Of a stretch of 64,000 nucleotides of DNA, positions 56,201 to 58,753 are shown one piece after another. The notes beneath the pieces are model-generated. The model was not told where the DNA came from. It searched no databases and worked only from the letters and a program-made list of their open reading frames with translations. The position numbers and the translations under genes are program-made. The DNA is from Pocillopora damicornis (Eukaryota): positions 558,001-622,000 of the forward strand of contig NW_020844837.1 in NCBI RefSeq assembly GCF_003704095.1, in the 5' to 3' direction. How positions within the stretch are numbered: the stretch's first letter is position 1; every line of letters starts with the position of its first letter.

Positions 56201-58753
56201 ACCGTCGGACTTTCCTTCAGATAACAACTTTTCAAGACTACTATCATCCGATTGATCATTTTCTTGGGGTAACATTTTGAGAGTTCCTTCCTGTAAAGGT
56301 ACTTTGATATCCGTACTTGGATTGGTTGCCTTTTGTTCAAGGTTGGGCTCTGGTGTAGGGGCAGACCCTTGAGGACTGGTTGGCGAGTCTGACATGGCTT
56401 TTAATGCATGTGATGTCTTGCTATTTTGATGATGATGAAATTTTGGCTGGTCAACTTCGAGTCCTAGCTGCTGCGGATTTTCTCCTTGTTGAAATATACC
56501 ACTGAGTTCCTGATTCTTATCAATGGTGCTCCCTGTACCTATGATCGTGGCGTTAACTTTACCATTCCTTATCACGACCCCATCTCCAATCTCGCCACCT
56601 TCAATTATTCCTCCCTCGATAACCCCACCCTTAATTTTACCAGCAAGGACAAGCCCTCCCTTCAGCCGTCCACCTTCCATGACTCCACCTTTCAACACAC
56701 CTCCTTCTATTGTTCCTCCTTTAAGAGTTCCTCCCTCTATACTTCCATTTTTGAGCTGTCCACCGAGCATCGCCCCAGACTTCAGAGTCCCTCCAGATAT
56801 ATCTCCAAATTTGAACTCACCTCCCTCAACATTTCCTCCATGAAGAACTCCACCTTCAACTTTTCCACCCCTCAAAGTTCCGCTTTGTACCTCACCTCCT
56901 CTAAGCAGTCCACCCTGCATGCGTCCTCCACGAAAACGCCCACCGGCCACCACTCCACCCTTCATTTCCCCGCCTTCTACAGTTCCTCCTAATATCCTTC
57001 CTCCAAATACATCGCCACCGAGAAGCTTTCCTCCTTCAAGTCTACCATTCACCAAGTGCCCTCCTAACATTTGCCCTTTTGCAATTACCCCGCCCTCCAT
57101 AGTTCCATTAGCTATTCTTCCTCCGACAATCTGACCCCCTTTAATGATACCACCCTCTACCGACCCGGCTTTTATCTGTCCCCCTTGAATTAGTCCCCCA
57201 GAAATTTGACCACCGGATATTTTTCCTCCCATAATCCGAGTTCCCTTATAAGGTGGATTCCAAGGCAGAGCGCCATTCGGCTTCTTCGGAAAAAAGCGAT
57301 CGACGTGTTTTTCGGAATCTCGAGGAGGTATGCGCAAGAAAGTTAAGGGATTTCCAACTTTGATTACGGGCCCTTTTACGTGACCACGAAAAGGAATTCT
57401 CGTGTCTCCAAATGACCCTTGTCTCCATCTCATTGAGTTTTCTGCCGGAAGGAAAGGCGTTAATCCTTCTCCATCTCTCCCAACCTGTTCACTGGTAAAC
57501 ACAGGAGAACTTTTGTGGGACGTTAAATCCATATTATGGTTTTGGGATTGTCGTCCAACCTCCACTTCCTCAGGGCTTCCTAGTGATACCACTTTAGTTA
57601 CGTTTCCTGGACGATGCTCATTAAGAGCCTCTAAAAAATTTGAAATGTTCCTTTGGCTGGCCAACCTTTCGTGTTCATCCATCTTACTTTCACTCTGTTG
57701 TACAGACTGGTCAGGGTTTCGTCCATGGCCAAAATGATCGAGCATTCCACGAAAAAAATTTTCGAAATCCTCTTGAGAGGGTAAACGAAATTTAGACGAA
57801 GACCCTGTTCCTGGATTTGTCGGCGAGGACCCCACATGTTTGCTTGACTTGTGCATTAACGTGTCAAAGTTGGACTTTGTAGGACGAACCTTTTTCATTT
57901 TTAGCGGAGGAGGCTTGTCTCCACGATCAATGGCGTCATAGAAATCGTCACTACCACTATTTTCCTCTGTGTTTGAGGGGGAACCTTCATCCCATGTTGA
58001 AGCTGGTGTAGGCGTCGACGCGTACTCTGGCATGTTATTGTAGAAGTTGTTGTTTTTATTACCTTCACTTGCATTTCCATTCAAAGCGTGAAAATAGTCT
58101 GACAGAGTGTTGTTGTCGATCATGCTCACTTCTTTGATATCCATGCCGTCCATATCAATTCCTCTATTGTAAGACCCTGATATGTCATCAAAAGAGTCAA
58201 GTGTTTTTGTAATAGTTTGTCGCTCCGCGCTTAGGTCATCTTCGACTTTAGTTCTTTTCTTTGTAGATGTCTCTTTGTGGCGTATGGTCTTGAGTGGAAT
58301 TTTATGTCTTTTTCGGGGTGCATAATTTTTCTTGTCGTCCATTTTACTTTCTTTTACGCTAGGTACCATTTTTTCTCTTTCCTGATACTCTCTAAAATTG
58401 TCATTGGTCTGAACAGTTTTCTTCCTCGTGCCAGAGAGGCGACCCATATCAACAACGCGTCTTTTAGGAAACCCACGTGAACCTTTAAAATGGTGCTTTT
58501 TAACTTTCCTCTTTAATTTGAAATTTCCATCGAAAAAATCGGTGCTTCTTTTATTACCGTCTGCAATTGTTTTCCCGGAGTCTTCTGCATCTTTGGAAGC
58601 ACCATAAAGGAGAGACACGTCTCTATGTTCTTGATATTTAACTGTTTGCACTGAGTTGTTGTCAGTCGTCTTACTTCCGTATTTCCTCGTAGAATGTACC
58701 GCAGAAAATTGTAAAAGCAACAAGATAATAGCGATTCCAGTAGTGGTCCTCAT
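47202..58753 (-). CDS. Large secreted mosaic protein: signal peptide, low-complexity region, 43 Gly pentapeptide repeats, LamG/ConA-like domain, 4 TSP1 repeats. Exons: 58753-55747, 55390-55217, 55023-54769, 54387-54154, 52647-52495, 50051-49854, 48659-48486, 48034-47861, 47395-47202. About 1520 aa.
   Basis: All eight introns are phase-1 GT-AG. Signal peptide MRTTTGIAIILLLLQFSAVHS. LamG-like LHLNGHNAWLGAGDFSGGCISDPDTCDDGLSF...WQDVLITW...GMKMYVN...LMIGRPN...DIAFWEKYLS. Four WSxWxxCxxxCGxGxxxRxRxC repeats. The join between the LamG part and the TSP1 exons is inferred. Confidence 0.75.
51500..52647 (-). CDS. Extended form of exon 5 of the secreted mosaic gene: possible alternative terminal exon encoding a basic K/R/N/P-rich tail
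   Basis: The frame entered at acceptor 52647 stays open to TAG at 51502-51500, about 330 codons past the GTAAGG donor at 52494. Confidence 0.55.
56585..57229 (-). repeat. Coding array of 43 in-register pentapeptides (G/x)-G-x-hydrophobic-x
   Basis: Runs from GGKIS GGQIS GGLIQ to GGVIE GGIIE GGEIG. Position 2 is always Gly and position 4 is always I/L/V/M/F. Confidence 0.95.

Follow-up and report, generated by a model that had tools for sequence, protein, structure and literature searches.

The minus strand of a 64,000-nucleotide stretch of the Pocillopora damicornis genome (RefSeq assembly GCF_003704095.1, contig NW_020844837.1, positions 558,001 to 622,000; called the window below) encodes a secreted protein with an uninterrupted array of 43 glycine-rich pentapeptides. 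This array is very probably a β-solenoid. As judged from structure predictions, its coil is most likely right-handed, three-faced and 15 residues (three pentamers) long, and not built from four units. We consider it probable that the array is a single-chain, right-handed triangular β-helix that serves as a rigid spacer or strut of fixed length in an anthozoan secreted protein.

Sequence of the repeat array

The array covers window positions 56585-57229 on the minus strand and corresponds to residues 509-723 (215 residues) of a 1004-codon open frame (55739-58753, minus strand); a plus-strand translation of the same coordinates is meaningless. A first-pass annotation, made from the sequence alone, had already given the array these coordinates. 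They are correct, with the gene on the minus strand. The repeat region is organized as follows:

57230-57244, minus strand: degenerate unit 0 (GTRIM), N-terminal starter strand (AlphaFold2 strand at model residues 27-29)
56585-57229, minus strand: 43 pentamers G-G-x-[ILVMF]-x; according to the prediction, each makes up one side and the Gly-Gly corner of a three-faced right-handed β-helix (sequence and AlphaFold2)
56531-56584, minus strand: unit 44 (DGVVI) and C-terminal cap (RNGKVNATIIGTG) with a conserved N-x-T sequon (strands predicted up to model residue 254, pLDDT 84-89; pLDDT, predicted local distance difference test)

The run thus consists of 43 contiguous units, or 44 if DGVVI is counted, with the cap behind it and the degenerate unit GTRIM in front. 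Position 2 of the pentamer is glycine in 43/43 units and position 1 in 34/43. Position 4 is hydrophobic in 43/43 (I16/L11/V8/M6/F2). At ordinary residue frequencies, a run of this kind should be impossible by chance. On the DNA level the repeat is hardly visible: Tandem Repeats Finder detects one stretch of 47 bases only, the 15-nucleotide units share a mean pairwise identity of 50%, and all four glycine codons are in use. Because of the diverged codons and the short detected stretch the array is not a recent DNA expansion. The earlier view of 43 in-register pentamers with diverged codons, locked in register at the protein level, was confirmed by these counts. Glycine makes up 36% of the array, which is basic (24 Lys/Arg and 17 Asp/Glu residues, net charge +7, isoelectric point (pI) 9.8).

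Units 5, 9, 13, 17, 25, 33, 37 and 41 end in Glu, as do units 27, 35 and 42; a residue other than glycine occupies position 1 in units 5, 9, 13, 29 and 33 and also in units 11, 24, 31 and 40. The units that the first-pass annotation had listed (the first group in each case) were correct, while the lists were incomplete. Of the Glu residues at position 5, 8/11 fall into one class modulo 4 (hypergeometric p ~1.5e-4, uncorrected for the four phases), and the positions of this class are conserved in Nematostella. The 2-unit period is stronger than the 4-unit period, with Lys/Arg at position 5 confined to even units (13/13) and Glu nearly confined to odd ones (10/11). An autocorrelation of unit similarity peaked at lag 4 in hexacorals (z 2.8-3.8), which reveals a 4-unit (20-residue) period. 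By the same measure this period was not seen in octocorals or in a divergent set of arrays termed group 2, where only the 10-residue alternation is kept. The 20-residue super-periodicity described at first therefore holds for hexacorals, but it is absent from two other clades and weaker than the 2-unit period.

The outward position 5 is hydrophobic in units 7-16; this belt is not conserved in Nematostella. Conserved N-x-S/T sequons are found in unit 9 (N-G-T, residue 549), in unit 33 (N-G-S, residue 669) and in the cap (N-A-T, residue 734). A strand of the form [LI]-[RH]-I-x stands before the first GG in every clade, and 72 family members share the C-terminal cap motif.

Predicted fold

An AlphaFold2 model of the array, based on a 27-sequence alignment, has pLDDT values >90 over the whole repeat. 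Each unit forms a 3-residue strand on positions 3-5, and the Gly-Gly pair lies between the strands. The same behaviour is seen in a second model (pLDDT >90), made for a group 2 array with 46% identity. The DSSP strings of both models repeat every 15 residues. In the second model, 8- and 3-residue strands alternate (76-83/86-88, 91-98/101-103, 106-113/116-118).

The coil length was deduced from the DSSP periodicity and from the ranges of structural alignments, not from the model coordinates. Structures were compared by VIA-align. The best solved match was TibA (4q1q, Z 18.8, root-mean-square deviation (rmsd) 2.3 Å), with 217 model residues spread over 274 TibA residues (ratio 15:19), followed by Ag43 (7koh, Z 17.9, rmsd 2.8 Å), both covering nearly the entire array. 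The second model matched TibA with a Z of 15.4 (196 residues over 243). The usual rise of a β-helix is 4.8 Å per coil. Rods of equal length thus have equal numbers of coils, and the model coil therefore has 15 residues. The same figure was obtained from 3p4g, an antifreeze protein with 19-residue coils, and from larger pectate-lyase-like helices. Left-handed helices (LpxD, GlmU, QdtC) could be superimposed only at an rmsd of 11-13 Å, from which we conclude that the model is right-handed. It shares the three-faced right-handed β-helix of AIDA-I-type proteins and does not show a left-handed coil. Pentapeptide-repeat proteins reached Z values of only 9-12 against the model (rmsd 3-4 Å), and roughly a quarter of their residues stayed unaligned.

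Other searches gave little. Foldseek against the PDB returned weak matches only (best E 3e-3, TM-score ~0.2; TM, template modeling) and the ESM Atlas contained no usable match. In Pfam, hmmscan found no family for the 1004-residue exon product at E up to 1, in agreement with the earlier remark that the repeat was not recognized as a named family.

Charge pairing between units

Evidence that is independent of AlphaFold2 comes from the charges on the surface. Stacking of unit i on unit i+N would bring the outward-facing positions 3 and 5 of the two units next to each other. We therefore counted pairs of charged residues at these positions in units i and i+N for 12 representatives from four clades. 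An alignment-free lag statistic was chosen because gapped alignment at the level of units is ambiguous between clades. The counts, which stem from related sequences and are not independent events, were:

Lag 1: 129 opposite, 55 alike (70% opposite)
Lag 3: 167 opposite, 14 alike
Lag 4: 45 opposite, 132 alike (132/177 alike)
Lag 5: 132 opposite, 40 alike
Lag 7: 109 opposite, 44 alike

The charge pairing points to contacts between units i and i+3, not i and i+4. Lag 3 was the cleanest in 11/12 representatives (the exception being the octocoral sequence P0102), and its direction was consistent in all clades. Tested against permutations of the unit labels, the charge covariance across the family reached its strongest negative values at lag 3, with z -3.7 at position 5 and z -3.4 at position 3; at lag 4 it was not significant. 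As a control we used 23 classical A(D/N)LXX arrays, which are known to have a four-unit coil; here, the fraction of opposite charges peaks weakly at lag 4 (0.50 vs 0.38-0.44).

We take the 20-residue period of the hexacorals to be lineage-specific, left by the duplication of blocks or by local patterning of the surface, and not to be the length of a coil. On a triangular helix, the Glu residues of class 1 modulo 4 would spiral round the rod. A Glu ladder along one edge, as it had been proposed, would not form in this geometry.

Relatives and conservation

Annotated orthologues are present in Stylophora (array region 94% identical), Oculina, Desmophyllum, Montipora, Acropora, Nematostella (LOC5513112, 62%) and the soft coral Dendronephthya. 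Between Stylophora and Nematostella the array is 64% identical and the N-terminal region 21%. No other part of the protein is as well conserved as the array, which argues against a disordered chain.

Exactly 43+1 units were counted in 53 homologues, and every named one among them belongs to Scleractinia or Actiniaria. Octocoral-type arrays have 31+1 units, while those of group 2, found in ENA assemblies, have 34-36, including a 33+1 form. In ~2,100 units of 55 distinct sequences, position 2 remains glycine and position 4 hydrophobic. The only exceptions are a Gly-to-Val substitution at position 2 in P0034 and a single-residue insertion in P0020. In addition P0029, a scleractinian-type orthologue of 988 residues, lacks exactly three mid-array units (15 residues), a clean deletion that would take out exactly one coil. 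The changes in P0029, P0020 and P0034 are either natural variants or assembly errors. Frequent register-breaking indels, which the first-pass annotation had named as an argument against its own proposal, were not found; this one insertion and the three-unit deletion were seen.

At least two further array-bearing lineages with 31-36 units occur in ENA and Logan assemblies (P0036-P0056). In at least one of these genes, the group 2 gene of P0038 (L006), a LamG-like exon (9959-10231, plus strand) follows the array and is 26% identical to the coral one. The array family may, from these sequences, reach beyond Anthozoa. Long arrays of G-G-[RT]-I-[EQ] pentamers were also observed in a protein of Papilio xuthus (P0035, 802 residues, array at residues ~280-580), which lacks a signal peptide and has a weak phage tail tip match as its best Pfam hit. 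Another protein (P0065, 1745 residues), retrieved only via its five-residue periodicity, contains ~55 near-perfect (A/T)GRVE pentamers at residues ~1250-1520; by eye, its ends resemble NPC1/Patched-type transporters.

In the databases, some orthologues are named 'Hemicentin-1' or 'Glutamine-rich protein 2', and P0035 is named 'Ribosome-binding protein 1'. All three appear to be automatic name transfers, the first presumably derived from the TSP1 repeats and the other two from low-complexity similarity.

Gene structure, expression and domains

The array gene runs from the signal peptide to the last TSP1 exon as follows:

58691-58753, minus strand: predicted signal peptide, ~21 residues around a hydrophobic core, with ...AVHS at its end (by eye from the translation)
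55747-58759, minus strand: first coding exon with signal peptide, long poorly conserved N-terminal region, array and linker (RNA contigs and open reading frame)
55391-55746, minus strand: intron that follows the first coding exon (skipped at a joint in the RNA contigs of X1, X5 and X8)
54149-55390, minus strand: conserved block with Cys, weakly LamG-like/ConA-like, in three exons 55217-55390, 54768-55020 and 54149-54386 (RNA contigs and orthologue match)
51500-52624, minus strand: open frame with a low-complexity linker exon, of which the first part alone matches the Stylophora protein (by eye; the positions are those of the open frame)
49837-50028, minus strand: TSP1 exon 1 (PF00090, E 2.4e-12)
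48480-48665, minus strand: TSP1 exon 2, ends approximate, frame different from the listed open reading frame (WSxW...CSxxCG motif at 48642)
47820-48035, minus strand: TSP1 exon 3 (PF00090, E 1.6e-10)
47202-47378, minus strand: TSP1 exon 4, last coding exon (PF00090, E 2e-11)

The start codon of the first coding exon is located at 58753, and 1002 codons plus one base of this exon are coding. RNA contigs from polyA or oligo-dT libraries of three studies span 55747-58759 unbroken, with a loose end at 58759. At their joints, 55391-55746 and 54387-54767 are skipped with GT..AG borders on the minus strand, and the contigs extend into an upstream exon of the 5' untranslated region and into a downstream exon. 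The array, itself unspliced, therefore belongs to a mature spliced mRNA. In the own 234-Mb genome, a second copy was not found (weak chance-level matches only), so that the gene is single-copy.

The signal peptide is conserved in the orthologues as well. Shortly behind it, a dibasic site F-P-K-R-R at window positions 58459-58488 (minus strand; residues 89-98 of the exon product) is shared with Stylophora; from its sequence it may be a propeptide cleavage site.

Three of the TSP1 exons in the window match PF00090 (E 1e-10 to 1e-12) and the fourth was assigned by its motif. It corresponds to the second TSP1 of the Stylophora orthologue, and the orthologues also have four TSP1 repeats. With a profile of the orthologues, the thrombospondin repeats of properdin and thrombospondin-1 were matched in the PDB at E 1e-41. 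The four TSP1 domains named in the first-pass annotation were hence confirmed. The LamG domain named with them received weak support, since PF13385 matched this region in 1/8 orthologues only (E 2e-4). The downstream exons were searched separately and not joined, i.e. the LamG-like domain as three pieces, and in this form no Pfam LamG match was obtained in the window, nor any LamG in the PDB profile search.

Comparison with known β-solenoids

Like the pentapeptide-repeat proteins (Rfr fold; MfpA, Qnr, HetL, Np275/276; PF00805 clan), the array consists of tandem five-residue units with an inward-pointing central hydrophobic residue (i) and often a glycine at i+2, and its predicted helix is right-handed. 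Their published consensus is (A/C/S/V/T/L/I)(D/N/S/K/E/I/R)(L/F)(S/T/R/E/Q/K/V/D)(G/D/E/N/R/Q/K) (PMC8145042). In contrast, position i-2 of the array is Gly (43/43 here, and all counted units in 55 arrays) and not A/C/S/T/V, position i-1 is not D/N, and the center is mostly a β-branched Ile or Val instead of Leu or Phe (I 44%, L 23%, V 17%, M 12%, F 4%). No match to PF00805, PF13599 or PF13576 was obtained at E up to 1. The predicted coil is a triangle of three units instead of a square of four. A right-handed triangular helix had indeed been proposed for pentapeptide repeats by Bateman et al. in 1998, but later proved incorrect for these proteins (PMC8145042). If the models are right, the Gly-Gly variant appears to realize this discarded geometry.

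The passenger helices of AIDA-I-type proteins (TibA 4q1q, Ag43 7koh/7kob) are likewise three-faced and right-handed; Gly-Gly pairs form their corners, and each side turns one aliphatic residue inward. They are, however, bacterial, have coils of ~19 residues instead of 15, and are joined to an outer-membrane β-barrel, which is missing in the array protein, the product of a spliced eukaryotic gene. Sequence homology was not detected, and the exon product has no AIDA, pertactin or autotransporter match in Pfam. The likeness is a convergent or generic solenoid similarity.

The spruce budworm antifreeze protein (CfAFP) is a triangular β-helix with a 15-residue coil and resembles the array in both respects. 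CfAFP is left-handed, Cys/Thr-rich and short, whereas the array models are right-handed; a Pfam match to CfAFP was not found. With thrombospondin-type matrix proteins (properdin, thrombospondin-1, hemicentin) the protein shares its C-terminal half, a weakly LamG-like block followed by four TSP1 repeats, but none of these proteins has a Gly-Gly pentapeptide array.

Proposed model and alternatives

Based on the sequence and the models we propose the following architecture. Each pentamer would form one side of a triangle, with a strand x-h-x whose middle residue (I/L/V/M/F) points into the core; the chain would then turn tightly at a Gly-Gly corner. One coil would take three pentamers (15 residues), so that units 0-44 would give ~15 coils, instead of the ~11 estimated at first, and a rod of ~7 nm at a rise of 4.8 Å per coil. 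The outward positions 3 and 5 would line up as ladders in which Lys/Arg alternates with Glu/Asp from coil to coil, and the resulting salt bridges could zip the turns together. The starter strand and the conserved C-terminal cap would close the ends of the rod, and two or three conserved N-x-S/T sequons would lie on its surface. Poorly conserved, probably disordered segments are expected on both sides. The signal peptide and the N-terminal region would be located upstream, and the LamG-like domain and then the four TSP1 repeats downstream. The number of units appears to be fixed per lineage, at 44 in stony corals and sea anemones. The constant number of units, the capped ends, the zipper of salt bridges, the sequons on the surface and the place between poorly conserved segments and adhesive-type domains lead us to infer that the rod is a stiff spacer or display strut, set in its length, of an anthozoan extracellular matrix or adhesive protein.

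A bolder version of this model has about an even chance of being correct. It would make the array the first natural right-handed triangular β-helix with three pentapeptides per turn, enabled by the near-invariant glycine at i-2 and used by anthozoans, and by other animals represented in public assemblies, as an extracellular molecular ruler whose 44 units have been held since the split of stony corals and sea anemones. In a literature search of limited reach, a three-unit coil was not found described for natural pentapeptide repeats.

Several observations weigh against the triangular spacer. The main one is the 20-residue period of the hexacorals, which a 15-residue coil does not explain. In a phmmer search of PDB sequences, pentapeptide-repeat proteins were the only solved relatives, matching in the expected register (E ~2e-8). 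The fold comes from AlphaFold2, a method that may over-predict or even hallucinate solenoids on repeats, and the relatedness of the sequences behind the charge counts has to be kept in mind. Finally, nothing on cell type, localization or binding partners was found in the literature, which leaves the spacer role an inference. No paper on the orthologue accessions or on their LOC and UniProt identifiers was found, nor were these identifiers present in the supplementary data of a Desmophyllum skeletal proteome preprint and of the Stylophora cell atlas.

A different coil is that of the first-pass annotation, an Rfr-like quadrilateral β-helix with four pentamers (20 residues) per coil, ~11 coils and a Glu ladder that binds cations or mineral. 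It would account for the phmmer result, for the 8/11 Glu residues in one class modulo 4 that are kept in Nematostella, and for the lag-4 peak of hexacoral unit similarity. Four units per coil would, however, stack like charges in 75% of the charged pairs, and both AlphaFold2 models have 15-residue coils that fit TibA and Ag43 far better than pentapeptide-repeat proteins. The invariable glycine at i-2 lies outside the published consensus (PMC8145042), Pfam pentapeptide models do not match, the array is basic, and the 4-unit period is missing in two other clades. We regard the four-faced coil as quite unlikely. The more general claim of an extracellular β-solenoid is supported by the two models and the fold search, in a protein secreted according to its signal peptide. 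Mineral templating is unsupported, given the basic array, the presence of the family in the non-calcifying Nematostella and the lack of a skeletal-proteome record in the literature, although the latter is not evidence of absence from the skeleton. An intertwined homotrimer, a triple β-helix as in phage tail fibres and spikes with unit i resting on unit i+1 of the neighbouring chain, is less likely still. Among the distant sequence matches are indeed phage-type proteins carrying Pfam 'Decapeptide' and Pentapeptide_4 repeats, the 10-residue charge alternation pairs opposites at lag 1 too, and the hydrophobic position 5 in units 7-16 hints at an interface. Charge complementarity and covariation are nevertheless clearly strongest at lag 3 and not at lag 1, the monomer models are confident, and the hydrophobic belt is not kept in Nematostella.

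The fold might be three-faced and the job of the rod nonetheless be binding, either self-association as in Ag43 and TibA or the recognition of polyanionic glycans by its basic surface (net charge +7, pI 9.8). The closest solved folds are self-associating autotransporter adhesins, and LamG-like and TSP1 flanks are typical of adhesive matrix proteins. A common fold is no proof of function, however, and the identity to TibA and Ag43 amounts to only 18-22% within Gly-rich repeats; we consider a binding rod unlikely, though worth keeping in view. The least probable reading is a disordered or elastomeric Gly-rich chain without a fixed fold. A glycine content of 36% and the possibility that AlphaFold2 hallucinates solenoids on repeats would fit it. 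Yet the unit number is fixed in the best-conserved part of the protein, glycine 2 and hydrophobic residue 4 are kept with two exceptions in ~2,100 units, and lag-specific charge pairing is unexpected for a random coil.

β-Solenoids serve as models of amyloid, as scaffolds of antifreeze proteins and adhesins, and as building blocks in protein design. If the triangular helix is true, few known regular solenoids would be as thin as this right-handed single-chain coil of 15 residues, made from the simplest possible unit with a pair of glycines at the corner and a single buried aliphatic residue on each side, and its alternating-charge zipper would make it an attractive design scaffold. For cnidarian biology, the analysis defines an uncharacterized, strongly conserved secreted protein of stony corals, sea anemone and soft coral that is testable in Nematostella, and it corrects the misleading database names 'Hemicentin-1' and 'Glutamine-rich protein 2'.

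Other features of the window

A 290-residue acidic open frame (61271-62143, plus strand) is arranged head-to-head with the array gene. Exon-like frames with small-GTPase (Rab-type) motifs (DTAGQERF...) are found at 41857-42051 and 43602-43898 (both plus strand). Runs of N at 26108-26372, 26483-26582 and 31124-31223 are assembly gaps or masked stretches. Exon frames resembling α/β-hydrolases, with a GHSMGG motif, are located at 38014-38806 and 37278-37511 (both minus strand).

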